Shown here piece by piece: positions 195 through 63,570 of a DNA stretch of 64,000 nt. This stretch comes from Macrostomum lignano (taxonomy: Eukaryota), in contig NIVC01001130.1 of the NCBI GenBank assembly GCA_002269645.1, positions 124,001-188,000 on the forward strand, read 5' to 3'. The notes under the pieces are model-generated. The model was not told where the DNA came from. It worked only from the letters and a program-made list of their open reading frames with translations, and ran no database searches. The stretch's first letter is position 1. Each line of letters opens with the position of its first letter. A program made the position numbers and the translations under genes.

Positions 195-8920
<8,726 letters not shown>

Positions 8921-11612: not shown

Positions 11613-12419
11613 TTATTCAGTATATCGTTTACTTTGGTTGTCATTATATTGTCTTGGATTGCCACGTGATCGGCAGTCTCTGGCGTAATGACCAATTCTT
11701 CCACAGGTGTAACAAGTGGGTGGCGGAGCGTATCTCTGTCGCTGTGGCATGATTGCAGAAGTTTGGTACTGCTGCATGAGTTTGCTCAATTGTTCTCCCA
11801 ATTGTGTCGTATCACTACTACGAGAAGTCAGGAGTGGGGCACTTGCTTCCCATTGCATGCCGCAACGAATTAATTGTTCCTCTGTCTCAATGGTTTCTCT
11901 TAACAACCTGTCTCGCAGCGAAGGTTGAGCATTATTAATGACATGGAGGATTAGGCTTTGTTCTTGGTCAGCAAGGCGTTGTCTTTCTCGTGCAGCTAGT
12001 TCTGCTGGTCCGATAGGCTGAGCTCCTGGGTTCGGTGGTGGTGGCTGGTGCAACGCTTTAATAATTTTGCGGACGTCATCGACGAAAGTAAGGAAGGATT
12101 CCGTCGGACTCATTTTTCGATTATGAAGTTTGTGTAGAAGCACAGATCGATTGGTTCCACATCTGGCGAATTGTGCTCTCAGTTGTGTAACTAAAGTATG
12201 ATAGTCTTGCTGTGCGGCGGCATTTAGTTTGCCATAAATTTCTCGAGCAGTACCTTCTAACAGTGGAGGAAGAAGAAGTGCCTTTTCTGGATTTTGTAGT
12301 CCGTATTCGCGAGTTACAAGGTCGAAGTGTTCAATGAAGGTGTTAAAATCTTTATCCATAGTATACATTCCAACAGTTTCCTTGACATCGCGATGCACTG
12401 TAGGGTTTCTTCGAGCCAT
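11613..12419 (-). CDS. gag: Retrotransposon Gag (capsid plus CCHC zinc knuckle), 268 aa
   Basis: First ATG at 12419 (AAAATATGG context). Capsid-like FIEHFDLVTREYGLQ...LLEGTAREIY...DYHTLVTQLRAQF, MHR-like KMSPTESFLTFVDDV, and zinc knuckle CYTCGRIGHYARDC, ending in TAA. Confidence 0.9.
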   Translation of the reverse strand: MARRNPTVHRDVKETVGMYTMDKDFNTFIEHFDLVTREYGLQNPEKALLLPPLLEGTAREIYGKLNAAAQQDYHTLVTQLRAQFARCGTNRSVLLHKLHNRKMSPTESFLTFVDDVRKIIKALHQPPPPNPGAQPIGPAELAARERQRLADQEQSLILHVINNAQPSLRDRLLRETIETEEQLIRCGMQWEASAPLLTSRSSDTTQLGEQLSKLMQQYQTSAIMPQRQRYAPPPTCYTCGRIGHYARDCRSRGNPRQYNDNQSKRYTE

Positions 12420-12765
12420 ATTTTCAAATGGGAACGGCAAGAGGACCAGATCTGGATCAATTTCCAAAGGATTTTCCAGATTGGACTTTCAAAGTGGCGA
12501 ACAAGTGTTGTGTGTGTGTGCAAGCTCTTATTTACTTAAAGGAAGAAAGGAAAATGGACACGGGGCAAAAAAAATTCTGTGTTGCCTTTACCAAAGAAAG
12601 AAATTGAGATAGGATATTCGCAAATTTAACAAAAGTATAAAACGGTGCACGAAGAATCAAAGGGTCTCTATGCAAACAATGGCGGTTCGGTAAAAAGTTC
12701 AGAAAAATTTGCGCAAAGGACTTGTGTCAAAGTACTTTCAGCGATCTAGCCTGGTAGCGCTTGAG

Positions 12766-24994: not shown

Positions 24995-25496
24995 TAATAT
25001 CTGCTGCACGTATTTTACCGATGGTTCTGTCTATTTTCGTCTACAGCCACTCATGAGGGGAGGGGGGTAAGTTAATTGTACAGTTAAGCAGTAGAGAAAT
25101 GTACAGGAGGGCAGCTGTGTACACTTTAAGGGATTGTGCTTGAGAGAATGTAAGGAATGTGCATAAAAAATGTTGTTGCGAGTACTCTTGATACACACAG
25201 TATATTCATGCCTGCCCGCAGCCCTCTCCCCCCACGTGTGCACTAGCGCCTGCACCGCATATATCATGACAGGAAAAGAAAGAGCTGTAGTGCGCGTCAA
25301 GTTTTTGTTTACCCAAATCGTAAATGCTAGCGAAATACAGCGGCAAATTGTAGCGCATGAGTTTTTACATGCAGTTCTCTACGCTTTTGTTTTTATCTAT
25401 CTGACACCCGGACGTTGTCCTCCTTTACTAAAAAATCATTACGCACAGACCTGTCCAGAATTTGAACTTGAAACGACCACGCCCAATAGCAAAAAC

Positions 25497-28400
25497 ATGC
25501 CACGCCCGCACCGTTTCAAAGAGTCGTCATCGGCGCCACAGTCGACGGACTTGCTGGCCTGCGCTTTCTTGTCCGACAGGCAGCTGGAGGAGCGCATGGT
25601 AGAGATGCGACGGTGCATTGTGAACCTGCGCCAGCGCTGGGACTCAGACAGGCAGCAGCAGGCCAAGCTGCTGCTGCGATGGCTGGAGACCGAGGCAGAG
25701 AATCGGCCACAGGCGGAAGCTCCACCGGAGTCCGAATGGCCACTAGTTTTGAATCGGTGGCGCGACATCCTTGCCGTTGATAGAAACTGGGCCGACCTGC
25801 GCGACGACAGCGAAGAATTCTTGAAGCAGTTTCGGTTGCTGGCGAATGAGCAGCTTCGGCAGCAGTTCTCTGTGCTGCGGGAGTACACTGATAATATTAC
25901 CTATTCGCTTGTGTTTCGCAAGGTGCTGCAGGTAAGTTTCATCCCTACCGAATCAATAGTTCCCAGCCAGTGGACAACAAAAATACTCGTACAAGGACGT
26001 TGCACTAGAAATCCAGACTATTATTTTAGTCAGTTTTAATAGCTAAATTTACTAGCAAGCTAAAAAGTAGAAGCCTTTTAGAACTAAAAATGACTATAAC
26101 CGGACCGGTTCAAGAACTTCTTGGAGCAATTATATGCTTTTTGTCGATCTATCGATTCAGAGGTGGATTCGCAAAGACAATTTCTTATCTGTAGCGTTTT
26201 TGCTGTAGCGGCTTTGTTGTTTTTGGTACTTTTGTTCCTTTGCAAGCCGGCTGTTCATTTTGTCTATGCCCATTCTTTAGTTGTACTTTCATCCTCTAAT
26301 TTTAATTTAATTTGTCCATTGTTCAATCCAACGTACAGGCCCACCCAAGCTATATTATAAGCCTTAAATCAATCACAAATCTGATATATCAAGGCTTAAG
26401 AGAAAAATTGCCGAGATGTCAAGGTTCATGGAAGGCAAATAAACATCGGGGATAGCTGAGATGCCAATGGTCAATTGGGAGTTGTTGGTAGGCCAAACAT
26501 CAAAGACAGAGTGAGAGTTAAGCCATGGCGTAAAGGGAGTCTTTGATGTCAAAGTCCAAGGGGATGCTGATATCTTAGACTAGATAGCTCCAACCTCAAA
26601 TACTGAAGTATGGTCTATATTATCTCTAATCATCACTCTCTAACCATCAGGCCTTCCGAACAAGGGAAAACTCTGAGGCTGAGCTCATGGTGTACGTCTA
26701 TCTAATAGAGCTTATAAATATCGATTTGTTCAATTACACACAATGCGGCTTGGCGCCGTCCTGCGAGAGGAGCTGCGTCTATCGCGGCCTCACAATGTCC
26801 AGCGATCACTGGCTGAGCTTTAAACGCGTGTTCAGCCAGCCAGTCAATGCCCGATTCGTTGCCGTTCCGCTGGCGCTGACTTCGGCCAGCCGCAGCATCG
26901 ACGTAGCGATGCAGTTCATGCTGAAGGAGTCCGCTAAGAACTCAACTGATTCAACTGGTGCAGGTAAGCAACGGTTACAGGTCGACTAAAAAAAGAAAAT
27001 TTATCCGTTTAACTAAAATTAATGAAGGAGAAAACTGTCCGATAAGAGAGCCGGCATCTTACTCGTAATTACTCGTAATTTGATTGCTCAATTCGCCGCA
27101 AGGTCCGCAAAGCGCCGACTCGGATGTGCCCTGCCTGCAGGCGATTCACGTGATTGGCGTGCCCGACCGGCTGATGGAGCTGTATCGGCGGCGCTTTCCC
27201 CAGAGTGTAGTGAGCACCATCTGTGCCGTGGACGTGGCTGGTGTGTCCGCTCACCCGGAGGAGCAGGAGGTCCTGCTCCGCGGTGCCTTCTACCAACTGT
27301 TGGGCATGCAGGTAAGTGAGATGTTTGTGTTACATGTACATTTAAAAGTAAAAACACGCCATACAAAGGAAAAAACATATTCAAGAAGCGTCAGATTTTA
27401 AGCAGACAGTCCACGTATCGATGGGTTCCGCCCTGGGTCTGACTTGTAGGCCAAGAACTTGCGGGACGTCTCAAAGAAGATTAGAGATACGTTCATTTCG
27501 GCGAAATTTTTTCTAATAAACTTTAATTTTTGTTGCAGATCATGCATGCATGCCTTCCTTATACACAATGTAAGTTTATAAAATACTTCAGTTCGGAATC
27601 AACAATGCTTTGAAGCAGCAAGAGCTGAGGGGCTGAAACAGCTCACTCTTTATTTGAGAAAGTTCCAAAGGTGTCACCACGGACATTTGTCGACTGGCTT
27701 GTGATTGACGTCGACAGCGCATCGAATTTTGAGAGAAGATCTTTTGAGGGAAGAAATCTCTAAGAAGTCAGCCGGTCCATATTGACCAAGTCATCTGGCA
27801 TTGGGACAACACCAAGCCTCACACAGCTGCAGAATCTTAGAATGACATGGAGAAGCGAGGTATACGAAGGCTGCTGCACCAGGCCCCCGTACAGCTCAGC
27901 TTTGAACCTTTTTGACCGCTTCCTGTTTTCCTGGTTGAACAGCGATATTTCCGGGATCACACTGAAGGTGCAAGAGGCGAAATTGCAAAGGGCAAGGGAC
28001 TTGTAGATTGCAAAACTTCAACAGGTTGCACCGACTTACCCGTACAGCGTATTGCGTCGTTATCCGTCGATATAATGAAAAAAGCACATATTTGTTTGTC
28101 ATCGCCAGGAATGTCAAGCAGAAGTCGCAACCGTCGGGTTGCTGTCACGGACTACTTAAGTGTCGTTTAAGTACTTAAGTAGTCAGTGATTGCTGTACGG
28201 GTTAGGGATCACAGTGACGCTTTGATTCAATGCCAAAGAGATTATGTTACGTTATGTTATGTTTTGCTGCAGCAGTTTCATTTGTTGAAGTTTTAATAAC
28301 TTTGGTACAAATTTGAGAAACATTGTAAAAGCCGAAAGTTACGAGTATCGAAAGCCTAACAGCGTGACGTAGCTACATCATTTTTTGACGTAGCTACAGT

Positions 28401-29004
28401 TTTAAGCTCGCATCTGAACTTCATTGATGGAAACAAGATGAGTGTAATTTTTATACGCTTAGCAATTTGAAACGTCATGCGCTAGGTTTACAGTCTGTTC
28501 CACACGCAGCCCATAGAGCGGCTCACATTTCCTCTATATTAGCTCTACGGGTCCAAGTTTGCTCAGATGCTCAAAAAATGTGTATGAAGCATGTTCTGGT
28601 GAATTAATTTAAAAACGATATCGGGGAAATACATGCATCTGTGTGAAGATATATATAGGAGCATCATTGCTATTTTTCTCCATCTCACCTCGTTACAGGA
28701 GTCGCAGCAGCTTCGCATCAGTGCAGGTGGAGAATCACCCGGAACTGAACCGCGACAACTGCAGTTGGTGACGGCCAACATCCTGGAAATTCTAATGGTG
28801 AATGCTAATCGCGATCATCTGAGCAACGGTCGCCTAGGAGACCAGGACGCCCCAGCTCGAGCCCTGTTCGCCACCATAGTTAGGATAGCCCGCTACGAGT
28901 ACTGCCTGCGCATCTGCAGAGAGCGCGGACTGGCGACAGACGAGAGTCAGTATGCGGCTGCCCTGAGCCAAGCGGAGTCGGAGCTGCAAAAGCTTCTGGC
29001 TTAA
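25497..29004 (+). CDS. Four-exon gene, ~420 aa, with an R-S-E type (C2/C3/ARTC-like) mono-ADP-ribosyltransferase domain
   Basis: Exons 25497-25931, 26651-26963, 27103-27311 and 28699-29004 join in frame (1263 nt) with GTAAG donors. Motifs in canonical order: EYTDNITYSLVFRKVLQAFR, VYRG (R at 26783), LTSASRSIDVAMQF (26879-), SAHPEEQEVLL (E-x-E at 27261/27267). The start may extend to the acceptor at 25448. Confidence 0.8.
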
Positions 29005-30984
29005 ACAACAGACTTCTCTGCTCTTGCATGGAGTCAACTGGACTTTTCAAATATCCAGATTCACTTTTGCTATTCCAAAGACACATAACTGCAATAACAA
29101 TAAATTAAATAACTAATAAAAACACACATTTAAGATCAGAGTTCCGTCACAACTTTATTTTTTTAGCACACGAAATTTCTTGTGATCGATCGAAGTGTAT
29201 CGACGGACATTGGACGCATTATGTCACCTACTTGGAAATTATTATTATAGAATTTTATCCAGTGGCGGCGCAGTATCTCTAATGGGGGCGGCGGTTGGGA
29301 AGTCACGCAGAATTTTGACAAGTTACGAGCTACAAGCTCTGACAAGTGACAAGCGAGAGGTGATGCGTGCTTGTTACGAGCGGTTTGTTTCATAGGCATC
29401 ACTTCATGAGAAGTGAATAGCACTTGATTCTCGACAAGTTTGAGTAGTTTAGAGAAGTTTGGCAGCAATTCGCGAATAACTATCAATGAAACTAGCAGAT
29501 TTTCCCAGTACTTTCAATTTGCATGTTCTATTTGGCTTACGGACGTTTCCCCTCCGGCATTTCTTCTCCAGAGATTTTCTGAAAATGGAAAAGCCCATTG
29601 GCAAGATCACTCTGACGGGAACGCTCTGGCAGAAGCACTTTAGCAAAAGGACTTAATGGGAGCACTTTGGCGAAAGCACTTAGGTTTGAGAACTTTGGCA
29701 GGGGAAATCTGCTCCACATGTCGTTGTAATAATATTGTCGTTTTAATAGTACTGTCGTTTTAATGATATAATCGTTTTAATATTACTATCGCTTTAATAT
29801 TACTATCGCTTAATACAATAATATATAATATCAGTCGGTTTAAAAATACTGTTTTTCCTTCTCTAACGATAAGTATTTAATAATACTGATTATTCTGTTC
29901 TCTGATTTTTTGGGTTCCTGTCCTCTCGTTATTTTGTTTCCTCGTTCATTAAGGCGTCCGTCACTCCGTCGTTAGATTTATTGACACATTATTGGATATT
30001 TAACTTACTTTTTAGCAAGAAAAGCAGATGGACGTGTTCGTCTTGCCCTCAATCAGCCAGCCCCCACAGTTCTTACTCACTAAAACCGAGTTTCCAGTCT
30101 CTTCTTATCTATTTTATGGGTAAATTTATATCGCAGAAGTCACTGCTTGAACTCAGTTGATTTTAAGATTTCAAGAGTTATAGCAGTTCTAGCATTATGA
30201 CAGTAAAAGAAGCTATCGAACCATTCGAGCCAAACAAGTTTGTAAATTTATTATAATTTCGAAGTTCAAAACAGCTACAGGCAAATTTGCTGCCAGATAA
30301 AACAACACCCGCACACAGAGACAGAGAGGGATTGATCAGGTGAGCAGAATAGAACAAAGCAACTTGACAAAGAAACAACTAATTAGCTAGCTGTGCAGTT
30401 AAGCAGAAAAACATATGCTACCAGTTTAAAGTAAACTGGACAAACTTAGCAAACTTGCGAAAGCGTGCAACATAAGATTAACAAAGCAAAACAATAATGT
30501 TGGGACGCAAAAAGGCTGAATATGGTTTCCGTTTCTAAATAGGCCTCTCATTATTGGGATTAAATAATCAGCAGAATAAAACCAAATTACCTGTAGATAA
30601 TAGACCAAAGGTGAATATTTGGAATTAATCGAACACAAGGCTAAACTTAACTACTTATGTAAGTAGACACGCAGGTGATAATGTTGCAGTTGACAGACAG
30701 ACGCGCTGGCAATACGACCATGCAGATGCTGTGTAAAGCACTAGTATGCAAATAATGTACTTTCTTTACTTAAGTCTACGCCAGCTGCCATCGTTATGTG
30801 CTGTGTATGTGCGCAGGTTATAAATAAACTTATATTACTCAATGTGATGAGCAGTGCCGAAAAAGATTAGGCCGCAAAAATTCCAAATAAAACAAAATAA
30901 ATCTAAAAATTCTTTTACAATCCAACATTTACTGGTATCAAAGTATTCTTTAATTCTAGAGCAAGTCAGCTGACACTTTAAAGT

Positions 30985-31785
30985 GTCAGACTGGAGCCAC
31001 ACTGACACCCTGACAGATGGTCAGACTGGAGCCACACTGACACCCTGACAGATGGTCAGACTGGAGCCACACTGACACCCTGACAGATGGTCAGACTGGA
31101 GCCACACTGACACCCTGACAGATGGTCAGACTGGAGCCACACTGACACCCTGACAGATGATCAGACTGGAGCCACACTGACACCCTGACAGATGGTCAGA
31201 CTGGAGCCACACTGACACCCTGACAGATGGTCAGACTGGAGCCACACTGACACCCTGACAGATGATCAGACTGGAGCCACACTGACACCCTGACAGATGG
31301 TCAGACTGGAGCCACACTGACACCCTGACAGATGGTCAGACTGGAGCCACACTGACACTCTGACAGATGGTCAGACTGGAGTCATACTGACACCCTGACA
31401 GATGGTCAGACTGAAGTCATACTGACACCCTGACAGATGGTCAGACTGAAGTCATACTGACACCCTGACTGGGGGTCAGACTGGAGCCATACTGACAACC
31501 TGACTGGGGGTCAGACCAGACTGGAGCCACACTGACACCCTGACTGGTGGTCAGGCGGGAGCCACACTGACACCCTGACTAGGGGTCAGACAGCAGCCAC
31601 ACTGACACCCTGACTGGTGGTCAGGCGGGAGCCACACTGACACCCTGACTGGGGTCAGACAGCAGCCACACTGACACCCTGACTGGGGGTCAGACAGCAG
31701 CCACACTGACACCCTGACTGGGGGTCAGACAGCAGCCACACTGACACCCTGACTGGGGTCAGACAGCAGCCAGACTGACACTCTG
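30985..31785. repeat. 35-bp minisatellite, array 1
   Basis: Unit TCAGACTGGAGCCACACTGACACCCTGACAGATGG, diverging toward the 3' end. Confidence 0.95.
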
Positions 31786-32629: not shown

Positions 32630-33210
32630 CCCCAGATGGTCAGACTGGAGCCACACTGACACCCTGACAGATGGTCAGACTGGAGCCACACTGACACCCC
32701 TGATGGTCAGACTGGAGCCACACTGACACCCTGACAGATGGTCAGACTGGAGCCATACTGACACCCTGACAGATGGTTAGACTGGAGCCATACTGACACC
32801 CTGACAGATGGTCAGACTGGAGCCATACTGACACCCAGATGGTCAGACCGGAGCCATACTGACACCCTGACAGATGGTCAGACTGGAGCCACACTGACAC
32901 CCTGACAGATGGTCAGACTGGAGCCATACTGACACCCTGACAGATGGTTAGACTGGAGCCATACTGACACCCTGACAGATGGTCAGACTGGAGCCATACT
33001 GACACCCCAGATGGTCAGACCGGAGCCATACTGACACCCTGACAGATGGTCAGACTGGAGCCACACTGACACCCTGACAGATGGTCAGACTGGAGCCATA
33101 CTGACACCCTGACAGATGGTTAGACTGGAGCCATACTGACACCCTGACAGATGGTCAGACTGGAGCCATACTGACACCCCAGATGGTCAGACCGGAGCCA
33201 TACTGACACA
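32630..33210. repeat. 35-bp minisatellite, array 2 (same family)
   Basis: Same unit as 30985-31785, with a shorter variant recurring about every 5 units. Confidence 0.95.
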
Positions 33211-33396: not shown

Positions 33397-35130
33397 CTAG
33401 TTCTTTTCCTTCGCCGAAGACTTGTCGTCGGCGTCGGCAGCGGGCTCGGCAGCTGAGCCAGTCGCAGGCTGCTGCTGCTGCTCGGCAGGATAATAAGCAG
33501 CCATGCGGACGTGCCAGGCAACGGAGGTGACGGCGCTGATAGTGCGGAATTGGTGCACAACGCCGCGCGGTATGTAATAGATATCGTTGTCGCGAAGGTG
33601 CTGCCGGCTATAGCGGAATCCTTCGCGTCTTAGTAAATTCAATTCGGCGTCGTCTAGCCAGAGCTGGGGCGAGCACTGAGTCATTGGCGGCTCAAGGATG
33701 TCCAGCTGGAGCCGGATGATCAAGTCGGTGTAGTGGCGCGGATCGAACAGGATGGCGTCTTTGCACACCCGGCCGGGCTCGCCCAGGCCTGGCCGGCGGT
33801 TCTCCTCGGCGTGGACGCACTGCAGCATGCCGACGGCAGCGGTGGTGTGCCGGTCAAGACCGTCGTCGGCGTGATCGGCATGGGCGTGGGTCCGATCGGT
33901 GATCACCACCTGGCGTCGGCCGCGGGACCCGGTGCTGTACATCTGGGATAGGCTGTCTCTGCCGCTGCCGGAGCCGCGCTCTGAACCGCTGCACAGGGCC
34001 TGCAATTGAGGTGGATAATGTGAAAGCTGAACGTCTGGGAGTGTGGCTGCTCAGCCTGAGGATCTGGGAGGGTGGCGGACAAACTTAAGCGAATAGAAAT
34101 GAATGACATCTGGCTAGGAAAAGAATCACACGATTAAGCATCAAAGATGATAAATTAATCTAACCTGCTCGCCGGGCCTTGTCCACAAGATCGGGCCGTC
34201 ATTGGAGCTGCTAGGCTTGCTGCCAGCCAGATGGGACATTGGGCCCCAGGGCATGACGGGCGCCAGAAAGGGATTTGACTCAAGAGTAGCCAGCATGTCG
34301 TTCATTAGGCAGCCAGTCTCTTCACCTTTCGCACCAACCATGCTAACGGATTCCATCGAGCCGCTGCGAAATGTGCCGTGCGCGTAGTTGGCCCGAATTC
34401 GTTCCAAATAATCTGCGGCGGTTAACGATTCCACTTCGTTCTTTTTCTCTAGGTGACGCGATTTCACAGCGAGATTTGGCCGCTTCCGGCACAGTTCGGA
34501 TAGCAGATCCGGCAGGTCGTGAGCGGCGCCGTGAACCACTCCGACGCAATAGTTGCTGTGCATTCGGCCGGGCTTGCCGCGCTCTTTAACTAGTAGATTT
34601 CTTAGAAATAGGGTGGCAAATTTGGCCAGCTGGGCCCGGTCTAATCTGGCCAATTCGCCGGCGTAGGCGTGCAAAGCCAGCCCGCCGCCATTGGAATGCT
34701 TCTCAATGTACATTAGATCGATTAGTTTGCGGCGCGGCTGAGCAGTGAGCTGCATCATGTGCTGGTCGGGGCTGTGCCCATTCTTGGTTGCGTCATCTGC
34801 AGCGGCGGATGGAATGGCTGATGGCGGAGCGGTTGCTGGGGCCGGCTGAGACTCCTCGGAGTCTGGATGATGTCGATTATGCTTCTTTTTCTTCTTTGCC
34901 AAAGATTCTTCTGGTTGCCGATTTGCATCTAGTTCTCGTTTCAGCTGCTTGCCGCTGGGGCTGGTTTCGGCCTGTGGCTTTGCTGGCGACTCTTGCTCCA
35001 GCTGCTGCTTAGAGTCTGGCTCCAGCTTCATCTCCGATGGGGCCGGCTGCTCTATGGCGATGTGCTTTTGGCCACTGTCACAGTTGCCATTTGTGTTTGT
35101 GTCTGCTGGCTGATTTTCTGTTGCTGCCAT
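33397..35130 (-). CDS. RSBN1: RSBN1/RSBN1L-like lysine demethylase (KDM9), two coding exons, ~522 aa
   Basis: Exons 34165-35130 and 33397-33999 (phase 0). Diagnostic blocks NGGGLALHAY, GVVHGAA..LPD, PWG...S.DGPILWTRPGEQ, DRTHAHADH, LQLDILEPPMTQC, DNDIYYIPRGVVHQFRTISAVTSVAWH match RSBN1. Confidence 0.92.
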
Positions 35131-36799: not shown

Positions 36800-37320
36800 A
36801 TCCTTGGTTTATCAAAAGCAATATTCTTTAATATCAAGTGCAATAATTGATGGCTTATCAAGTGCAATAATCCTTGGTTTATCAAGCGTTGTAATCTTTG
36901 GCTTATCAAGTGCAATAATTTTTGGTTTATCAAGCGCAGTAATCTTTAGCTTATCAAGTGCACTAATCTTTGGTGTATCAAATGCAATAATCTTTGGCTT
37001 ATCAAGTGCAATAATCATTGGCTTATCAAGTGCAATAATCCTTGGTTTATCAAGCGCAGTAATCTTTGGCTTATCAAGTGCAATAATGATTGGCTTATCA
37101 AGTGCAATATTCATTGGCTTATCAAGTGCAATAATCCTTGGTTTATCAAGTGCAAAAATCCTTATAGTAATCCTTGGTTTATCAAGTGCAATAACCCTTG
37201 GTTTATCTAGTGCAATAATCCTTGGCTTATCAAGTGCAATAATCCTTGGTTTATCAAGCGCAGTAATCCTTGGGTTATCAAGCGCAGTAATCCTTGCTTT
37301 ATCAAGTGCAATAATCCAAT
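36800..37320. repeat. 24-bp minisatellite
   Basis: Unit GGCTTATCAAGTGCAATAATCTTT; explains ORFs 36804-37322 and 36812-37327. Confidence 0.95.
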
Positions 37321-39232
37321 AAGCCAATACAACAAATTTGTCATTTTACACAATGTATCTATTGTCATTATTGTTAGGATATACTTTGATATATACTGAA
37401 AAATGGTAAGACCTTTGTTGTATGCTGGGAAATCTTGACATACATGTCACCTTCCAAACTATGGCCTTAGACAACCTTATGACATGTATGAGTCACTAAG
37501 TCAATGAGTGATTTTATAATATAAATATACAATGCCAAATTTATATTAAATTAGTAATTGCTATGACTATATCTAAAAGAATGGAGCCCCCTTTTTGGAG
37601 ATGGCAACATTCTATTTATTGTTAAACTTTAAAACAATGGTACAATGTGTGCTTAAATAGTAGACATGCCTAATAAGCTGAGCTCTAATATTATAGACAT
37701 GGTTGCTATTTCTTAAAGTACTCCATAAATTTAAATAGGTTCTTACTTGTCTTTTATCTATTGAAATTATAGTGTTATTTGAGATTGTTTATGTTATGGA
37801 ATATTGTTATGGAATTGTATGTTATGGAATATGGAGTATGTTAAGGCCTATAGAAAATTGTTATAGAATATTATAGAATATAACTTTTCACTTTAAATAT
37901 ATTATAGTAGGCATTTATTAAATCCACTACATACCATAACATTTGTGTACTATCATCATAACATGACATCATAGTCCCAAAAGTGACCTAGAAAATTTGG
38001 CATTCCTTCAGTTTATGATCACCTTCTATTTTGCCACTTTTGGTTTATGATCACCTTCTATTTTGCCACTTTTGGTTTATGATCACCTTCTATTTTGCTA
38101 CTTTTAGTTTATAATAATCACCTTATATTTTGCTCAATTGTAGCATGAAAATGGTGTGTTCAAAACAAAAAAACCAAAAATAGGCTTACACAAAGTTAAA
38201 AGTGTGGTTTGTTAGATAATGCTTAGGCCTTATATATCAGCTTTGGTATACAATCATTTGAATATGTAATGCAAAAGAAATGATTGTGAACTGAAGCTAG
38301 GTTAAAATGAATATTATATGTAATGCACATGCACTTAAGATAGGCCTATAGGCTTAATATTATTATACGAGCTTTCATTTGCGATCGTTTTAGTGGAGTG
38401 CATATGTGGAAATGATTGTAAGCCAAAGGTGAGGGGGGATATGAAGGTGAGAAGGGATTTCAATGCCCTTGATCTGGAATAAGCAGTGGTTTTCTGCATG
38501 TGACTATTTGTCATATTTGACATGCTTTTCTATAGCTAGCTTGGGTTTTGGGTTCACAATCATTTCAATGGGCAATATCCTACCCCCCCTAATATCAATT
38601 TGGGTAATCGTAAACCAAATGTGATATATATCAGGCTGCCAGCTCAAACTTGACAGTTATAATTATTTGATAGGCTTTCCTACAGCCAGCTTCAGTTCAC
38701 AATCATTTTAATGTTAATGGGCAACATACATTTGGCGATTTGGGTGATCATAGGGGCCTAAAACAAAGGTGAAATATAAGCTACAACAGTTTTTACCATA
38801 TTTTGAAATAAACAAAGTCAGTTTGCCAACTTTTGATTTTGTTTGATTGGAAACCACCATCAGGTTTTATGTCTTACAACTGTTTTTAGTGGTGATAGTC
38901 ACAGTTTGAGGCGATCGTCACTGTTTAAGGTGATTGTTAACCAAAGGAATGCCAAAAATTCTTAGGGCCTAAAATATACATTGCCAATATAATTGAGTTG
39001 AGATTGAGACACAACTATACAGCACTGTTTATATTTTGAAACAAGTTTGTATTAGCCTAATTTCTAAAGAATAGCATGCGCCAGCTGGCAGGGCATGAGG
39101 CATATTATACTTTATGTCGATTAGTAATTGTTACAATTGTTTAATTATATTATTTATTATCAATTATCATAAACTATGTAGCACCGGCAGACGAATAGCC
39201 CAGCAGGCGAATAGAACAACAGGCCTATCTCT

Positions 39233-47124: not shown

Positions 47125-47261
47125 NNNNNNNNNNNNNNNNNNNNNNNNNNNNNNNNNNNNNNNNNNNNNNNNNNNNNNNNNNNNNNNNNNNNNNNNNNNN
47201 NNNNNNNNNNNNNNNNNNNNNNNNNNNNNNNNNNNNNNNNNNNNNNNNNNNNNNNNNNNNN
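47125..47261. other. Assembly gap (137 N)
   Basis: Run of N. Confidence 0.99.
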
Positions 47262-52600: not shown

Positions 52601-55600
52601 TTTTGTACTCAAGCCAGTAATGCATTCCTGAGACTGTTTAGTGCGCGCCAACTTTGCGCCTGTAGGCGTTGTCTAACGCGCAGTCCTCGCACTTGGTTAG
52701 CCGCCTGCGTACTGCTGGTACTGTGCGTTCACTATCTGCTGCTGCTGCCTCGGCCGTTGCTGACAGCCAACTCTGATGCTGCCCGGCAGCGTCTGGCAGG
52801 ATCGGCTGGACCAGCTGGCAGCAGAGACGGCAGCAGCCAGCGAGGTAGCGAAGGAGGCGGCGGCAACAGCGACAGCGGCACACCGCCGCGTCATCCTCGA
52901 CTGCAGTTCGCCTGCCGTCGCAGCGATGCGCCCGAGTGGCCTGTTGACCTCGGCCCCCTTCCGGCCGGCCAGCTGAAACTGAGGAGCGACGCTAAAATCC
53001 TATTATTAGTTGATAACGAGAACGGCCCGGTTATTAGGCAGCTAATTAACCTGCTGGAGCATATGCGACTGTCGTATAAGACTGCCCCGACTTGGAAACC
53101 GTTGCCGCATCTCACTAGCAGCGATCGGGGCCGCTTTGGAGCCATTCTGATGGATAGCCTGTCCGCCTACCTTAATATGGACAGGTAATTTTGTTTATAC
53201 TGTACCAGAGATCTGCCGTAAAACAAAATTGTATCAGAAGATTTTGACTCAGACAGAAATGAGTTCCCAACTTTGGACTGCCAGTTACTCTTTGAGTTCC
53301 CGACTGTTAACTGCCAGGCACTCTTTGAGTTCCCGACTGTTAACTGCCAGGCACTCTTTGAGTTCCCGACTGTTGACTGCCAGTTACTCTTTGAGTTCCC
53401 GACTGTTAACTGCCAGGCACTCTTTGAGTTCCCGACTGTTGACTGCCAGCCACTCTTTGAGTTCCCGACTGTTGACTGCCAGTTACTCTTTGAGTTCCCG
53501 ACTTTGGACTGCCATCCACTCTTTGAGTTCCCGACTGTTAACTGGCAGCCACTTATAAAACCTACGCCGCCTTACAGGTGGAACCGTGGCCTCCTAGACC
53601 GCTATTGTCGGGATTACGCTGTCGGCCAGGTGGCCGCAATGCTCGCCAGCGGCGGCGGCGGCAGCGGGGGTGTTCGTCGTCGTCGTCAGCAGCAGCGTCG
53701 CCGCAGGCAGCAGCAGAAGCTCTACCGCAACGGCCGCCTCGGCGACCTGCCTGTCTGGGCCTCCCCAGTGTCTATTGGGGATTTAATCAACTCGTCATCT
53801 TCAGGTAGTGCAAATATCGGCATTCACGTTAGCAGGTTAAGCCCGGTCACCCGGCTGACCAAATCCGGTATTCTGGCTGAACTGCCGCTGCCTGGCGACA
53901 CTGGCGCCGGGCATTGGATGACATTCAATACCAGCCACGAGGGCTACGGCTACGTTGCTTGGTTCAAGTCGTCAAATAAAGCCAACGGCGATAGCGGAGG
54001 CGACAGATTGGCCACCGTGCTGTCAGACAGCGGCCGATACGACGGCATCGCCCGGGTGATTTTCGGCTACGATTTCTCGCCTTGGCTGCACGCCGCTCTG
54101 CTGGCGGACGCCCTGGCCTGGACTAGTCGGGGTCGGTTTGCCCAATCGTTGGATAGATTTGTACAGGTAAAATTAGCCTCATTGGTGAGATTTAGTTGTC
54201 ACTGGCTGTTAAATTACAGCAGTCAGTTGTCATTGGCTGTCAAATTACAGCAGACAGTTGTCACTGGCTGTCAAATTACAACAGTCAGTTGTCACTGGCT
54301 GTCAAATTGCAACAGTCAGTTGTCATTGGCTGTCAAATTACAGCAGTCAGTTGTCACTGGCTGTCAAATTACAGCAGTCAGTTGTCACTGGCTGTCAAAT
54401 TGCAACAGTCAGTTGTCATTGGCTGTCAAATTACAGCAGTCAGTTGTCATTGGCTGTCAAATTGCAACAGTCAGTTGTCATTCATTGGCTGTCAAATTAC
54501 AGCAGTCAGTTGTCGCTGGCTGTCAAATTGTAGCAGTCTATCATCGTGTCTAGGCAACGTGACTTTCGCAATTCTTTATAATGGAGCTTAATTTTTTATT
54601 GCCAATTTAAATAAATGCGATAATACCCATCTCGATGCTACTGTTCAGTAGGCGATCTGTAAACAATGAATCATCGCAATTACTCGTATTCAGGTGGACA
54701 TTGACGACGTGTTCGTCGGCCCCAGTGGTCTGCGCATGCTGCCTAACGACGTCGACGCATTAGTTGCTACGCAACGGCGTTGGCGCAGTCGCTTCGGCCT
54801 GTCTGGTTTCACCTTTCAGCTGGGTTTCTCCGGCCGCTATTTTGGTCGCGGCAATCCGGCCGAGAATGCCGGCGACGCCAGGCTGTTGACTTTGAGGCGG
54901 CATTTTCTTTGGTTTCCGCACATGTACAAGCATAATAAGCCGCATACATATGCTAGCGCTGAGGCTCTGGAGGCTGTCATGCTCAAGAATAAAGATTGGG
55001 CCATCGAAAACGTGAGTGTTTGCTTTGTTAGTGCCAGTGCTTAGCTACTTTGTGCTGTTTTGTTTTCTTGCTGATTGTGTCTCCTCATGTGTCATTGTGT
55101 CACTGATTGTATCACTGATTGTGTCTCCCATGTGTCATTGTATCACTGATTATGTCACTAATTGTGTTATTTATTGTGTCACTGATAGTGTTATTTATTG
55201 CGTCACTGATTGTGTTATTTATTTTGTGTCACTGATTGTACTTTGTATCACTGATTGTGTCTCCCCATGTGTCACTGATTGTGTCACTGATTGTGTTATT
55301 TATTGTGTCACTGATTGTGTCACTGATTGTGTTATTTATTGTGTCACCGATTGTGTTATTGATTTTGTGTCACTGATTGTATCACTGATTGTGTCTCCCC
55401 ATGTGTCATTGTGTCACTAATTGTATCACTGATTGTGTATCCCCATGTGTTACTGATTGTGTATCCCCATGTGTCACTGATTGTGTCTTCCCATGTGTTA
55501 CTGATTGTCTTCCTATGTGTCACTAATTGTCTTCCTATGTGTCACTAATTGTCTTCCTATGTGTCACTAATTGTGTCATTGATTATGTCTTCCCATATGT

Positions 55601-58600
55601 CAATAATTGTGTCACCGATTGTGTCACTGATTGTGTCACTCATTGTTTTTCCAAGTGTCACTGATTGTGTCTTCCCATGTGTCACTGATTGTGTAATTGA
55701 TTATGTCTTCCCATGTGTCACTGATTGTGTATCCCCATGTGTCACTGATTGTGTCTTCCCATGTGTTACTGATTGTCTTCCTATGTGTCACTAATTGTCT
55801 TCCTATGTGTCACTAATTGTGTCATTGATTATGTCTTCCCATATGTCAATAATTGTGTCACCGATTGTGTCACTGATTGTGTCACTCATTGTTTTTCCAT
55901 GTGTCACTGATTGTGTCTTCCCATGTGTCACTGATTGTGTAATTGATTATGTCTTCCCATGTGTCACTGATTGTGTCACCGATTATGTCACTGATTGTGT
56001 CACTCATTGTTTTTCCATGTGTCACTGACTGTGTCATTGATTATGTCTTCCCATGTGTCAATAATTGTGTCGCCGATTGTGTCACTGATTGTCACTCATT
56101 TTTTCCATGTGTCACTCATTGTGTCACTCATTGTGTCACTCATTGTTTTTCCATGTGTCACTGATTGTGTCACTCATTTTTTCCATGTGTCACTGATTGT
56201 GTCACTCATTGTATCCCATGTCACTGATTGTGTCTTCCCATGTGTCACTGATTGTGTAACCGATTGTGTCACTGATTGTATCATTTATTGTGTCATTCAT
56301 TGTCCCACTCATTGTGTCTTCCCATGTGTCACTGATTGTGTCTTCCCATGTGTTACTCATCTGACACCGATTGTCTGATTAATCACGTGACACTGATAGC
56401 ATCGGCCTCTTCGATCGCAAAAACCCGGCAGGACCTGCCCATCAGCCCTGGCTACGCAGTCTCGCCGCACCACTCCGGTGTCTACCCGGTGCACGAGCCG
56501 CTATACGCCGCCTGGCGCAGCGTCTGGTCAATCAACGTCACGTCAACTGAGGAGTATCCGCACCTACGACCGGCCAGGCGTAGACGCGGCTTCGTCTATA
56601 ACGGCGTCCGCGTGCTGCCCGGGAGACCTGCGGCATCTACACGCACACGGTCCGGCTGGCGGACTACCCCAGAGGGCAGCAGCGGCTTCGGCAGCTGGTA
56701 CTGGGCGGAGAGCTGTTTCACACAGTGCTACTTCACCCAATCTGCGTGTTCATGACCCACATGCCTAACTATGCCAACGATAGGCTAGCCTACTACGTAT
56801 TCGATGGCCTATTTAACTTTCTGACCTGTCACACCAATATCCGACTGCGCTGGGCCGATCCGCAACGCTTAGCGACATTATATTTCAATTCGGCGCACAG
56901 GGAGGAGCGCCAGGCGCCGCTCTGGCTCAGCCCGTGCGCCGATCCGCGCCACAGAGAGATCTGGGCCGGCCCGAAGGATCTGTGCGCCCGCCTGCCCTCT
57001 CTACTGATTGTCGGACCGCAGAAAACTGGCAGTACGGCGCTGCACACGTTTCTAAGCCTGCATCCGCAACTGCTGCCCTCTATTAAGCATCCGCGCACCT
57101 TTGAAGAGGTCCAGTTTTTCACCGATCCAAACTACGCCAAAGGCTTGTTGCACTATTATTCGTATTTCAACTATACTAGAGAGTTCACCGTGAATTTCAC
57201 CGCCGACCCCGGCGCCAGGCCGATTTATTTTGAAAAGTCGGCTAATTATTTCGATCAGGCCCGGGTGCCAGGCCGAGTGAAAGCCCTGCTGCCCAGTGCC
57301 AGAATTGTGGCCATACTCATGGACCCAGCGCAGCGGGCCTACTCCTGGTATCAGCACCAGCTGGCTCACGGAGATCCAGCCGCTACTAATTATTCATTTT
57401 ATCAGGTGCGCTTCTTTGTTTCTGATCAATATTTTCATGCCAGTTTATCATTAACCAGTTGATCATCTCTCTCCTCATTTCTAACAGCTGTGATCTAATC
57501 TATACTTTCTCAGATCTTCTCTACTATCTTCAGTGTCGTCTTTACCCTCTCCAATCTCATCTCTACCCTCTCCGATCTCATCTCTACCCTATCTGATCTC
57601 ATCTCTACCCTCTCCGATCTCATCTCTACCCTCTTTGATCTCATCTCTACCCTCTTTTATCTCATCTCTACCCTCTCCGATCTCATCTCTACCCTATCTG
57701 ATCTCATCTCTACCCTCTCCGATCTCATCTCTACCCTCTTTCATCTTCTCATCTCTATCCTCTCTGATTTCATCTCTACCCTATCTGATCTCATCTCTAA
57801 CCTCTCCGATCTCATCTCTACCCTATCTGATCTCATCTCTACCCTCTCCGATCTCATCTCTACCCTCTTTCATCTTCTCATCTCTATCCTCTCTGATTTC
57901 ATCTCTACCCTATCTGATCTCATCTCTAACCTCTCCGATCTCATCTCTACCCTATCTGATCTCATCTCTACCCTATCTGATCTCATCTCTACCCTCTCCG
58001 ATCTCATCTCTACCCTCTCTGATCTCTTCTACCCTCTTTCATCTTCTCATCTCTATCCTCTCTGATTTCATCTCTACCCTCTCCAATCTCATCTCTATCC
58101 TCTCTGATTTCATCTCTACCCTATCTGATCTCATCTCTACCCTATCTGATCTCATCTCTAACCTCTCCGATCTCATCTCTACCCTATCTGATCTCATCTC
58201 TACCCTCTCCGATCTCATCTCTACCCTCTCTGATCTCTTCTCTACCTTCTTTCATCTTCTCATCTCTACCCTCTGATTGCATCTCTACCTTCTCAGATCT
58301 CGCCTCTACGTACCATCTTTGATATCATATTTACTGTCTCTGATCTCATCTGAACCCTTACTAACTAATCTCTTCTACCATCCCTAATCTCATCTCTCAC
58401 CTGACCAATCTCTCATATTGCTTACTAAATTCATCCACCGCAGGTGATCACATCTGACGACGCCGCCCCGCGGGAGGTCCGGCAGCTCCGCCATCGCTGC
58501 CTGCGTCCCGGCCGATACGCGAACATTCTGAAGCGCTGGTTTCGTCAGTACAGGCCGCGCAGCGTCTACCTTGTTGATGGCGACCAGCTGCGCAACAGTC

Positions 58601-60694: not shown

Positions 60695-63050
60695 ATGCTT
60701 CCCCGCCAGTCTATATTGTTGTTGATCCTTCAATTGATTGCATCATCATCCACCAAAACTGCCCGGCAAAGCAACAATAATTCCCGTAGTAACCGCCTAG
60801 CAACAATTAACGATGCCAACCAGTTGGCCAACTTGTGCATGATGGGGCGGCTGCACAAAGCTGAGCCGGGCCCGGAGCCTGGCCTGACCACCGGGCCTTG
60901 CATCGGCTACTCCGACAGTTCCTGCTGCACCGCCGAGGTCGGCAGTCGATTAGGCAGCAACGACGAGTTCGCACAGGCCGCGTTCCGGCTCGACCACTGC
61001 GGCAGGCGACTGTCGGCCGAGTGCGAGAAATGGTGAGTGACCGACCATTGAGCACGTGGCTGCTCTCTGGGCTACTCAGTGGTAACACCTGTTTGGTTCA
61101 GGTGAATAAGCGCGCATCGATATCAATCGATACTGGAATAAGTGCTGATCGATATTAATCGATACTGGAATAAGTGCCGATCGACATCAATCGATACTGG
61201 AATAAGTGCCGATTGATATTAATACATGCTGGAATAAGTGCCGATCGATATTAATCGATACTGGAATAAGTGCCGATTGATATTAATCGATACTGGAATA
61301 AGTGCCGATCGATATCAGTCGATACTGCAATAAGTGAAAATCGATATTAATCGATACTGGAATAAGTGCAAATCGATATTAATCGATACTGGAATAAGTG
61401 CAAATCGATATTAATCGATACTGGAATAAGTGCAAATCGATATTAATCGATACTGGAATAAGTGCAAATCGATATTAATCGATACTGAAATAAGTGCAAA
61501 TCGATATTAATCGATACTGGAATAAGTGAAAATCGATATTAATCGATACTGCAATAAGTGAAAATCGATATTAATTGATACTGGAAGAAGTGCAAATCGA
61601 TATTAATCGATACTGAAATAAGTGCAAATCGATATTAATCGATACTGGAATAAGTGAAAATCGATATTAATCGATACTGCAATAAGTGAAAATCGATATT
61701 AATTGATACTGGAAGAAGTGAAAATCGATATTAATCGATACTGGAAGAAGTGAAAATCGACATCAATCGATACTGGAATAAGTGCCGATCGATATTAATC
61801 GATACTGGAATAAGTGCTGATCGATATTAATCGATACTGGAATAAGTGCAAATCGATATTAATCGATACTGGAATAAGTGCTGATCGATATCAGTCGATA
61901 CTGGAATAAGTGCCGATTGATATTAATCGATACTGGAATAAGTGCCGATCGATATCAGTCGATACTGCAATAAGTGAAAATCGATATTAATCGATACTGG
62001 AATAAGTGCCGATCGATATTAATCGATACTGGAATAAGTGCTGATCGATATTAATCGATACTGGAATAAGTGCAAATCGATATTAATCGATACTGGAATA
62101 AGTGCTGATCGATATCAGTCGATACTGGAATAAGTGCCGATTGATATTAATCGATACTGGAATAAGTGCCGATCGATATCAGTCGATACTGCAATAAGTG
62201 AAAATCGATATTAATCGATACTGGAATAAGTGCCGATCGATATTAATCGATACTGGAATAAGTGCAAATCGATATTAATCGATACTGGAATAAGTGCAAA
62301 TCGATATTAATCGATACTGGAATAAGTGCCGATCGATATTAATCGATACTGGAATAAGTGCTGATCGATATCAGTCGATACTGGAATAAGTGCCGATCGA
62401 TATCAATCGATACTGGAATAAGTGCAAATCGATACTGGAATAAGCACGCATTAGTATAAATAGCCCTAACTAAGCTAACTAATATCACTCGCTTGCAATC
62501 AACCTTGACTCAAAGGTTCGAGCGCAGCCGCTGCCTGTACGAATGCTCGCCGAATCTCGGGCCCTGGCTGGTGAAAGTGTCCGGCTACAGCTGGCGCACA
62601 GAGCGAGCCTACGGAGTGCCGCTGTGCCATTCCCAGTGCCAGGCCTGGTACGCCGCCTGCGCCGCCGATCTGAGCTGCGTGCCCAACTGGAGCAGCGGCT
62701 TCCGCTGGATCCGCCAGGCCAACGGCAGCGGCTACGTGAACGTGTGCCCCGACGGCGGCCTGGCACAGTGCCGCAGTATTGCCCAGCTGCACAATCATAA
62801 GGCGGAACAATTCTGCGAAACTGTCTGGGACGGCGAATTCAAAGTGGTGCCAGACGGGTCGCCCTGCTTCCAGCTGGACTGGTCCACGGCCACCCGCAAG
62901 GCCAATCCGAACTTGGCTGTGACGCGGGCCGCCAGCCGGGAGAAGGTGGCCGCCTTCTATTATTCCCATGCGAGCGTTTTGAAGACGGCCAGCTCTGTGC
63001 TGTTTGGCTGCGCTCTGCTTGTGCTGCGTCTCTGTTTTGTTGCTTTCTAG
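60695..63050 (+). CDS. FOLR: Folate-receptor family protein (FOLR/Juno/riboflavin-binding fold), two exons, 290 aa, signal peptide and likely GPI signal
   Basis: Exons 60695-61032 and 62516-63050 (phase 2). C...HKAEPGPE, SCCT, DHCG, CLYECSPNLGPW, SWRTER, VPLC...C..W...C, NWSSGFRW, FCETVW; hydrophobic N- and C-termini. Confidence 0.93.
61125..62445. repeat. 32-bp minisatellite filling the FOLR intron
   Basis: Unit TCGATATTAATCGATACTGGAATAAGTGC(CG/AA)A. Confidence 0.96.
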
Positions 63051-63059
63051 TTTTGAAAA

Positions 63060-63570
63060 TTGCTGTGATCCCCAATATCAAAGGAATCCCAATCATTAAG
63101 ATCCCAAACATCAAAGAAATATTAAACTTAAACATTAAAATTCCCAATATCAAAGGAATCTCAATCATTAAAATCCACAATATCAAAGAAATCCCAATCA
63201 TTTATATCCCCAATATCAAAGAAATCCCAATCATTAAGATCCCCAATATCAAGGGAATCCCAATCATTAAAATCCACAATATCAAAGGAATCCCAATCAT
63301 TAAGATCCCCAATATCAAAGGAATCCCAATCATTAAAATCCCCAATATCAAAGGAATCCCAATCATTAAAATCCACAATATCAAAGGAATCCCAATCATT
63401 AAGATCCCCAATATCAAAGGAATCCCAATCATTAAAATCCACAATATCAAAGGAATCCCAATCATTAAAATCCACAATATCAAAGGAATCCCAATCATTA
63501 AAATCCCCAATATCAAAGGAATCCCAATCATTAAAATCCACAATATCAAAGGAATCCCAATCATTAAAAT
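63060..63570. repeat. 33-bp minisatellite immediately after the FOLR stop codon
   Basis: Unit AATATCAAAGGAATCCCAATCATTAAAATCCCC; explains ORFs 63053-63703, 63161-63610 and 63202-63579. Confidence 0.96.

Follow-up and report, generated by a model that had tools for sequence, protein, structure and literature searches.

A spliced gene of the flatworm Macrostomum lignano encodes a putative R-S-E ADP-ribosyltransferase of a rare, patchily distributed protein family

The gene Mlig029772g1 of the flatworm Macrostomum lignano, located on the forward strand of a 64,000-nucleotide (nt) stretch of contig NIVC01001130.1 (positions 124,001 to 188,000, assembly GCA_002269645.1; hereafter the window, to which positions refer unless another locus is named), encodes a 420-amino-acid (aa) protein whose core is predicted, with good in silico support, to adopt the fold of the ADP-ribosyltransferases (ARTs) of the R-S-E, cholera-toxin-like class. 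The protein is probably an active R-S-E mono-ART. Its sequence also leads us to favour, with rather less assurance, specificity for protein arginine and a cytosolic location. A wider proposal is offered tentatively and should be regarded as possible rather than probable, namely that the protein belongs to an undescribed family of cytosolic arginine-specific mono-ARTs, which in bacteria and certain fungi operates together with a receiver-like domain as one module, and which reached Agaricomycetes, cnidarians, and a flatworm by horizontal transfer.

The four exons (Table 1), when spliced in frame, give an open reading frame (ORF) of 1263 nt specifying 420 aa and a TAA stop codon, and all three introns have canonical borders (CAG/gtaagt, CAG/gtaagc, and CAG/gtaagt). 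In a search of 5.8 billion proteins the product matched with 100% identity the last 420 residues of GenBank entry PAA71870.1, "hypothetical protein BOX15_Mlig029772g1, partial", from Macrostomum lignano. The GenBank annotation of the assembly was built from a genome-guided RNA-seq transcriptome by means of StringTie, TACO, boundary trimming, and TransDecoder (PMC5730564), and since it came from RNA-seq transcripts, Mlig029772g1 can be considered expressed and its three junctions transcript-derived. An earlier note on this DNA had proposed four in-phase exons encoding about 420 aa, and the GT-AG borders, the length of the ORF, and the identity with the transcript-derived protein all bear this out. 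The start it gave, 25449, does not hold; comparison of sequences places the start of the coding sequence (CDS) at the ATG at 25497. The GenBank protein reaches 515 aa and is labelled partial, since the reading frame of the transcript continues without a stop ahead of the first conserved Met. Within the 492 nt upstream of the ATG the two genomic copies of the gene (see below) differ by 12 substitutions and 17 gap columns, including amino-acid changes and a 3-nt indel, and because this stretch diverges at the rate of the introns, the in-frame leader is taken to be a 5' untranslated region (UTR). In the homologues the conserved sequence begins at an R-x-x-R-F motif directly after M1.

The first junction lies inside a block tightly aligned across the family (...VLQ/AFR...), and exon 1 can be aligned with the homologues up to the conserved F147-R148 across that junction. 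Junctions 2 and 3 adjoin two flatworm-specific insertions of about 12 residues each, at ~247-259 and ~325-338, which are the only stretches of the core modelled with low confidence. The earlier note had described one insert of about 25 aa before the ADP-ribosylating turn-turn (ARTT) loop; an insertion is indeed present there, but it is the shorter one at ~247-259, the second lying further on. The catalytic motifs were read correctly, EYTDNITY... (with Y130), VYRG, TSAS, and PEEQEVLL all being present, and the E305 codon starts exactly at 27267, the position named in that note. Among the residues discussed below, R190 is encoded at 26783-26785, R213 at 26852-26854, S223 at 26882-26884, C290 at 27222-27224, E303 at 27261-27263, E305 at 27267-27269, N356-R-D-H359 at 28807-28818, and R373 at 28858-28860.

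A second copy of the gene, BOX15_Mlig013588g1 (Mlig013588.g1), is present on a 950-kb scaffold, the first being carried by a scaffold of 354 kb. Collinearity of the two loci extends for at least 19 kb, at ~95-98% identity and with the introns kept, which is consistent with the large duplicated fraction known for the M. lignano genome (PMC5730564). A count of paralogues had been suggested in the earlier note; this genomic copy was found, and a tblastn search inside the window revealed no further one. Between the copies the exons differ at 4 of 1263 positions (two synonymous changes, K57E, and F112L) with zero indels, as against 49 substitutions in 2230 intron positions plus 32 gap columns. The exons are thus 7-fold less diverged than the introns (Fisher exact p = 2e-6), which indicates that the coding sequence is under purifying selection. 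The ORF is intact in the window and flanked by ordinary animal genes. The introns, the animal flanks, the collinear second copy, and the transcript-derived model are all in keeping with the spliced host gene that had been claimed.

The full-length AlphaFold2 (AF2) model, built from an alignment of 48 family sequences, has a predicted local distance difference test score (pLDDT) of 86.1 and a predicted template-modelling (TM) score of 0.87, while a model of the core only (residues 112-362) has a pLDDT of 84.1; residues 27-176 and 359-419 are helical. When the core was compared with the PDB using Foldseek, the top eight matches were all R-S-E ARTs, with E-values from 8.8e-7 to 2.2e-2, and the next match had an E-value of 0.37. 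They comprise Vis (4xzk, E 8.8e-7, TM-scores 0.51/0.59; also 4y1w and 4xzj), HopU1 (3u0j, 1.8e-6), C2-I (2j3z, 8.2e-5), VsdC (3nts, 8.6e-4), SdeC, and SidE; with the full-length model, Vis and SidE-family proteins came first. The top matches in BFVD include phage and giant-virus proteins named ARTs or "NAD(+)--protein-arginine ADP-ribosyltransferase", the others being uncharacterized. In the model, R190 (within V-Y189-R190-G191) is located on strand 185-195, S223-A-S225 ends strand 214-225 and is followed by helix 228-246, and E305 is the first residue of strand 305-327, preceded by loop 294-304. The R-S-E class is defined by the beta1/beta2/beta5 arrangement of R, S, and E (PMC3102197), and the placement of R190, S223, and E305 follows the same pattern.

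The link to curated sequence families is provided by other members of the family. Scanned singly, 30 of the 48 aligned members match Pfam family PF01129 (NAD:arginine ADP-ribosyltransferase) below its gathering threshold of 22.3 bits (best E-value 3.1e-5), either in the stretch with the ARTT loop and the ExE motif (profile positions 170-205, corresponding to exon 3 of the flatworm gene) or in the N-terminal helices (profile positions 31-97). Four further members, which fit the family profile with E-values of ~1e-75 to 1e-80, pass the threshold with 25.7-28 bits over profile positions 52-167. Only two of the 48 match PF03496 (ADPrib_exo_Tox, exoenzymes of the C2/C3/VIP2/ExoS type), both below its threshold of 23.4 bits (best E 0.029, 14.2 bits). 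The flatworm protein itself fails both thresholds, with zero match to either family at E <= 10; judged from the sequences it can be considered a divergent relative of the ARTC/C2-C3 group by transitive homology, and not a member of PF01129 by the Pfam rule. Three independent lines of evidence, the predicted structure, the placement of the motifs, and the Pfam sequence bridge, agree on an ART-like core, and the conserved triad with the ExE motif goes far beyond a chance motif match. The description of the protein as a toxin-like R-S-E ART, made before any modelling, has held up in the AF2 and Foldseek analysis, its connection with PF01129 being transitive. Weak matches to a "superantigen" and to the kinase STK17B were discarded as chance similarities, being short and confined to helices or loops.

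Full-length homologues share 27-40% identity over 88-100% of the sequence, and all are unnamed "hypothetical proteins". The family is rare: 266 clusters were found at E <= 1e-3 among 1.84 billion representatives, and among prokaryotes it occurs in 17 of 185,579 species genomes. The bacterial carriers belong to Streptomyces, Actinomadura, Actinokineospora, Rubrobacter, and Solirubrobacterales, and also include two cyanobacteria, two Treponema, a member of Desulfovibrionaceae, and a member of Acidobacteriaceae; Actinobacteria, Cyanobacteria, and Spirochaetes are among the groups represented. The fungal carriers are Agaricomycetes (Tephrocybe, Termitomyces, Tricholoma, Lyophyllum, Obba, and others), and the cnidarian ones are Hydra vulgaris (LOC101237262), Actinia tenebrosa (LOC116296517), and Sanderia malayensis; many homologues come from metagenomic contigs. 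A tblastn search of phage and plasmid collections yielded no homologue. In several Lyophyllaceae and in Tricholoma, family members occur in pairs with consecutive locus tags on the same contig (P0010/P0266, P0025/P0281, and P0026/P0292; for example H0H87_002523/002524), which suggests tandem duplication.

Thirteen residues are invariant in the alignment, E165, L166, L171, R190, R213, P218, S223, E305, N356, R357, D358, H359, and R373, and those conserved in at least 90% of the sequences include Y130, F147, R148, Y189, G191, C290, and E303. The flatworm protein retains every invariant position. The classical R-S-E signature contains nothing that corresponds to N-R-D-H, R213, R373, or C290. Conservation runs through the whole length of the alignment, and both the N-terminal helical region and the tail at the C-terminus are found throughout the family, bacteria included; the helical character ascribed to these parts in the earlier note agrees with the AF2 model, but their treatment there as additions to a catalytic domain does not fit such conservation. 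Eight longer members of 500-640 aa (P0111, P0116-P0120, P0122, and P0125) have a C-terminal extension of 130-270 aa. The extensions of P0111, P0116, P0118, P0120, P0122, and P0125 gave no Pfam match, and the extension may constitute a further domain outside the known families. More generally, a Pfam scan of the N- and C-terminally extended members revealed no domain fusion and no delivery domain.

No signal peptide, glycosylphosphatidylinositol (GPI) signal, or transmembrane segment was detected in the flatworm protein, which has a hydrophilic N-terminus and a Kyte-Doolittle mean of at most 1.27 over any 19 residues; the lack of a signal peptide had been noticed before. The homologues in the alignment are likewise without a leader, and the default reading is that of a soluble, most likely cytosolic enzyme. 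As for specificity, the closest structural neighbours, Vis, HopU1, C2-I, and VsdC, act on arginine or guanidino compounds. In the R-S-E class the ExE motif, in which another Glu stands two positions before the catalytic one, is the established marker of arginine specificity (PMC3102197), and E303-Q-E305 of the flatworm protein conforms to it, the motif predicting specificity rather than proving it. We infer arginine specificity because of this rule and because all top structural neighbours are arginine-directed.

According to the proposed mechanism, the core (residues ~117-355) would bind NAD+ through R190, carried by the first core strand, and S223-A-S225, with which the following core strand ends. 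E305, at the start of the strand that follows the ARTT-like loop, would be the catalytic glutamate, and E303, two residues upstream, would direct the transfer to the arginine guanidinium of a protein target. The N-terminal helical region (~27-115) and the C-terminal helical hairpin (359-419), with the invariant N-R-D-H at the junction of core and hairpin, are predicted to wrap the core, and these conserved helical modules probably form a surface for substrate recognition or regulation. In bacteria the enzyme belongs to a small cassette with a membrane-associated partner, mostly a transmembrane-anchored receiver-like protein, by which it may be regulated or on which it may act.

Bacterial members of the family consist of 330-400 aa, begin with the family helical region, and possess no module for secretion, translocation, or delivery. 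In 7 of the 17 bacterial loci, representing four phyla, the gene directly adjoins one for a ~200-aa protein with an N-terminal transmembrane helix and a receiver-like domain; in loci L003, L005, and L012 the two are separated by tens of nt or overlap by 4 nt. The receiver-like proteins carry the motifs "LWVDDxPxNN" ... "ISD" ... "FYT", the usual conserved Lys before Pro being apparently replaced, and score 24.6-38 bits with Pfam Response_reg, for which the cut-off is 30.2. A hidden Markov model of these neighbours also detects the domain fused N-terminally in six longer family members (P0142, P0158, P0078, P0126, P0012, and P0180), one of them from the fungus Obba rivulosa. The fused domain lacks a membrane anchor, whereas the separately encoded neighbours are transmembrane-anchored. 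Adjacency together with fusion is good evidence of a functional link between the enzyme and the receiver-like domain, and the fusion argues for a regulatory or substrate role of this domain more than for a simple antidote.

Two other types of partner were found. At six full-length Streptomyces loci (L001, L002, L004, and L009-L011) the downstream gene encodes a DUF6236 protein, confirmed with Pfam for L002, and in Rubrobacter and on the P0039 contig the gene is preceded by one for an unnamed protein of ~300-360 aa with a hydrophobic C-terminal hairpin, the two being 53% identical to each other. From their sequences, all three types of partner appear to be membrane-associated. The other flanking genes are variable and include those for plasmid ParB, a Uma2 nuclease, and a DUF433/PIN-like pair. 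The animal copies stand alone. The remark in the earlier note that the protein lacks the tetratricopeptide repeats often seen with such domains turned out to have no relevance for this family, in which the recurrent partner is the receiver-like domain, absent from the flatworm locus.

Since the family is patchy across bacteria, Agaricomycetes, cnidarians, and a flatworm, its distribution suggests spread by horizontal transfers. A phylogeny built by neighbour-joining with 200 bootstraps places the flatworm branch only weakly: it groups in 40% of the replicates with P0039, from a prokaryote-type contig, and in 26% with a cyanobacterium, the rest being scattered. Within the family the flatworm sequence diverges most, and it is not specifically grouped with the cnidarians. 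The Hydra gene and the metagenome homologue P0002 are intronless; the flatworm gene has three introns.

The origin of the gene from bacterial or fungal contamination, or its being a dead fragment acquired by horizontal transfer, would agree with the patchy distribution, the many bacterial homologues, and a tree position often next to prokaryote-type sequences. Such an origin is nevertheless scarcely credible in view of the three spliceosomal GT-AG introns, the animal flanking genes (NDST and folate-receptor-like) on the 354-kb scaffold, the collinear copy with conserved introns on the 950-kb scaffold, and the intact ORF under purifying selection with its transcript-derived annotation. Nearly as improbable is a deubiquitinase (DUB), the activity implied by the name "Ubiquitinyl hydrolase 1" borne by the same protein in UniRef (UniRef100_A0A1I8H2J2). 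That name, an unreviewed automatic label, is its only support, although a near-invariant C290 and an invariant D358-H359 do exist in the family; no DUB or peptidase domain is found with Pfam at E <= 10, and the structural neighbours are ARTs, with no cysteine protease among them. The name looks like an automatic misannotation, which, speculatively, may have arisen through the combination of DUB and mono-ART (mART) domains in SidE-type proteins.

The two other alternatives accept the ART fold. One is a catalytically dead pseudo-ART kept as a scaffold or as a sensor of NAD+ or ADP-ribose, a reading for which it can be said that divergent eukaryotic ART-like families of probable pseudoenzymes exist, e.g., LRRC9 (PMC7955679), and that the flatworm sequence is the most divergent of its family and missed entirely by Pfam. 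Pseudoenzymes usually lose the triad, though, while here R190, S223, E303, E305, and all invariant positions are kept and the exons are clearly under purifying selection, so that loss of activity is considered improbable. Somewhat more weight is given to an active enzyme whose acceptor is not protein arginine but a nucleic acid or a small molecule, or which acts as an NADase or performs the first step of a SidE-like ubiquitin-directed pathway; this too is held to be unlikely. The acceptor is not determined by fold and triad alone, crystals of Vis, the best structural match, contained agmatine (4xzk), the mART domain of SidE/SdeC is among the matches and has the most aligned columns with the full-length model, and the family-specific invariant N-R-D-H and near-invariant C290 are without an assigned role. 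Yet in paired R-S-E enzymes ExE tracks arginine specificity, while Q-x-E or another residue at that position goes with other acceptors (PMC3102197), and E303 is conserved in at least 90% of the family. As for a SidE-like pathway, Pfam detects no phosphodiesterase or other SidE-type domain in the flatworm protein.

Several observations weigh against reading the protein as a cytosolic arginine-specific ART. The assignment as an ART is founded on a predicted structure and on transitive, mostly weak Pfam links; the Foldseek TM-scores are moderate (0.4-0.6) and the root-mean-square deviations high. Searches of Pfam (E <= 10), NCBIfam, and PDB sequences (phmmer) with the flatworm protein gave no useful match, even at E = 10, and the family profiles found no solved ART among the PDB sequences. 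Enzymes with the ExE motif can also use small guanidino compounds or, like the SidE family, serve other chemistry. Six-frame translations revealed neither receiver-like nor DUF6236-like domains in the window, in the paralogous locus, in the Hydra locus, or in metagenome loci L019 and L020. No characterised member of the family was found in the literature. Finally, given the bacterial toxin ancestry and the patchy spread, the earlier note's suggestion of an effector in innate immunity or genetic conflict is a reasonable guess, and nothing in the analysis specifically supports it. A search of PADLOC-DB 2.0 with the flatworm protein, four homologues of bacterial or unstated origin, and two receiver-like partners gave zero matches.

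The gene is situated among ordinary animal genes (Table 1), and the earlier characterization of its surroundings as a transposon-dense interval is only loosely true: alongside these genes the window contains one gag-like ORF and tandem-repeat arrays. The gag-like ORF is the only transposon-type coding sequence confirmed in the window, the scan for transposons not having been systematic. Arrays of ~35-bp tandem repeats (30985-31785 and 32633-33209) lie just 3' of the gene and are common to both copies, where they give BLAST ladders offset by ~35 nt. Long ORFs with periodic peptides (CLSV..., EVDIEMDIH..., SSLPSPI...) are found at 644-1213, 6871-8657, 36804-37327, 57533-58276, and 63053-63703, and by their sequence are best described as tandem or satellite repeats and not genes. 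An assembly gap of 137 N occupies 47125-47261.

Table 1. Features of the Mlig029772g1 gene, its surroundings in the window, and partner genes at other loci (positions refer to the window unless a locus, L with a number, is named)
Feature	Location	Strand	Remarks
5' leader (read as 5' UTR), transcribed	25212..25496	+	open in frame with the CDS; the GenBank protein starts LPAALSPH..., corresponding to window ~25212
Exon 1 CDS	25497..25931	+	aa 1-145; N-terminal helical region and first ART helices, including E-Y130-T...Y; donor CAG/gtaagt
Intron 1	25932..26650	+	719 nt, GT-AG; also in the paralogous locus L018
Exon 2 CDS	26651..26963	+	aa 146-249; ELINIDLFNY helix, VYRG, R213, PLALTSAS
Intron 2	26964..27102	+	139 nt, GT-AG; splits codon 250
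Exon 3 CDS	27103..27311	+	aa 250-319; STICAV strand, ARTT-like loop, E303-Q-E305 (27261-27269), VLLRG
Intron 3	27312..28698	+	1387 nt, GT-AG
Exon 4 CDS	28699..29004	+	aa 320-420 and TAA; last beta-strands, N356-R-D-H359, R373, C-terminal helical hairpin
Two AATAAA hexamers	29099-29104, 29115-29120	+	~95-115 nt 3' of the stop codon; likely poly(A) signals by sequence match
Gag-like ORF, CCHC zinc knuckle	11613-12467	-	PF00098, E 1.8e-7; retroelement remnant, 13 kb upstream of the gene
JmjC-like ORF	33397-35130	-	weak, sub-threshold; also beside the paralogous copy
Heparan-sulfate N-deacetylase/N-sulfotransferase (NDST)	53273-57462 (ORFs 53273-54553, 56725-57462)	+	HSNSD_N, Sulfotransfer_1
Folate-receptor-like gene	62493-63050	+	
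Receiver-like neighbour	L003 7090-7686		
Receiver-like neighbour	L005 7132-7833		
Receiver-like neighbour	L007 2889-3503		
Receiver-like neighbour	L008 5234-5914		
Receiver-like neighbour	L012 5303-5914		
Receiver-like neighbour	L016 569-1192		
Receiver-like neighbour	L017 3104-3844		
DUF6236 neighbour	L002 7112-8338		
DUF6236 neighbour	L009 7149-8375		
DUF6236 neighbour	L011 ~7160-8387		
Hairpin-protein neighbour	L006 4421-5317		
Hairpin-protein neighbour	L023 84-1175		

In bacterial toxins and vertebrate ecto-enzymes the ADP-ribosylation of arginine is well understood. According to a review from 2010, arginine-specific ARTs "seem to be lacking in" worms, insects, yeast, and plants, and no intracellular arginine-specific ART had been characterised, the activity having been detected biochemically and no cytosolic enzyme assigned to it (PMC3102197). 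No description of the gene or family was found in the searchable literature by locus tags, by ART with Macrostomum, or by family, the main comparative survey of ART families lying outside its coverage. Newly noted, at the level of sequence, are the helical N- and C-terminal parts and N-R-D-H as features of the family, the receiver-like partner, and the stand-alone animal copies. If the proposal is true, the flatworm protein would be among the first enzymes of an animal's own known to act inside the cell as "writers" of arginine ADP-ribosylation, and the family would represent a new kind of signalling or conflict system based on ADP-ribosylation. M. lignano is amenable to RNA interference and transgenesis (PMC5730564), and a conserved, expressed, signal-less R-S-ExE enzyme in such a tractable flatworm, with relatives in Hydra, sea anemones, and mushrooms, would make the question of an intracellular arginine ART testable. 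That a receiver-like domain recurrently adjoins the enzyme or is fused to it leads to the new hypothesis of a way in which a cell could keep its own toxin-type enzyme under control, and the family provides a further instance of a toxin-type enzyme of bacteria having been domesticated in several lineages of eukaryotes. Should the protein be inactive or its target trivial, the finding would shrink to one more divergent ART-fold family.

Among the known systems, Vis of Vibrio splendidus and other bacterial mono-ARTs of the C3/ExoS-like and C2-like kinds (HopU1, C2-I, and VsdC) resemble the flatworm protein most. They are alike in having a split beta core preceded by an alpha-helical N-terminal subdomain, in the R on the first core strand, in S-x-S ending the next, and in ExE after an ARTT-type loop; sequence similarity is not detectable, identity in the structural alignments being 12-15% and hidden Markov models giving no match. 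The flatworm family differs from Vis-type toxins in ~90 additional N-terminal helical residues, a C-terminal hairpin of ~60 residues, and N-R-D-H, and from bacterial toxins in general in the absence of a secretion or translocation signal or a delivery domain, its eukaryotic members being nuclear-encoded and, in the flatworm, interrupted by introns. Structural similarity is highest to the PF03496 group, although its thresholds are missed. The vertebrate ecto-ARTs (PF01129) are the only curated sequence family touched, with matches that jointly span profile positions 31-205, including ...S-x-F-P-x-E-x-E-V-L-[LI].... Vertebrate ARTCs are secreted or GPI-anchored ectoenzymes (PMC3102197), whereas the flatworm protein is without signal peptide, GPI signal, or hydrophobic segment, and the flanking helical modules differ as well.

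The longest alignments with the full-length model, 391-498 columns, were obtained with the mART of the SidE family of Legionella effectors (SdeA/SdeC/SidE), which suggests that the flanking helices also superpose. The SidE-family mART is an R-S-ExE enzyme that modifies R42 of ubiquitin; the flatworm protein has neither the DUB nor the phosphodiesterase domain, shows no sequence similarity to it, and the TM-scores normalised to SidE are 0.16-0.19. Like the flatworm family, Lart1 (Lpg0181) of Legionella was found by remote fold recognition; it is an R-S-ExE ART followed by a helical/coiled-coil C-terminus, and its target is an arginine in a cytosolic enzyme (PMC7949102). Its ART domain is N-terminal, without a preceding helical region, unlike that of the flatworm family. 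Homologues of Lart1 are confined to Legionella and Fluoribacter (PMC7949102), and none of the 17 bacterial carriers of the flatworm family is a Legionella. Both Lart1 (PMC7949102) and the LRRC9-type pseudo-ARTs (PMC7955679), considered as candidate relatives, were set aside as different families. The pierisins of Pieris butterflies and CARP-1 of clams are nuclear-encoded toxin-type R-S-E ARTs of invertebrates and are thought to be of bacterial derivation; they ADP-ribosylate guanine in DNA, and they have other catalytic-loop signatures and lectin-type domains. No kinship in sequence or domain architecture between them and the flatworm family was seen, though no search aimed at it was made. By inference from the model, the flatworm protein would work like an arginine ART of the C3/ExoS/Vis or ARTC type, from which it is set apart by its own conserved flanking modules, its motif, and the partner domain of its family.

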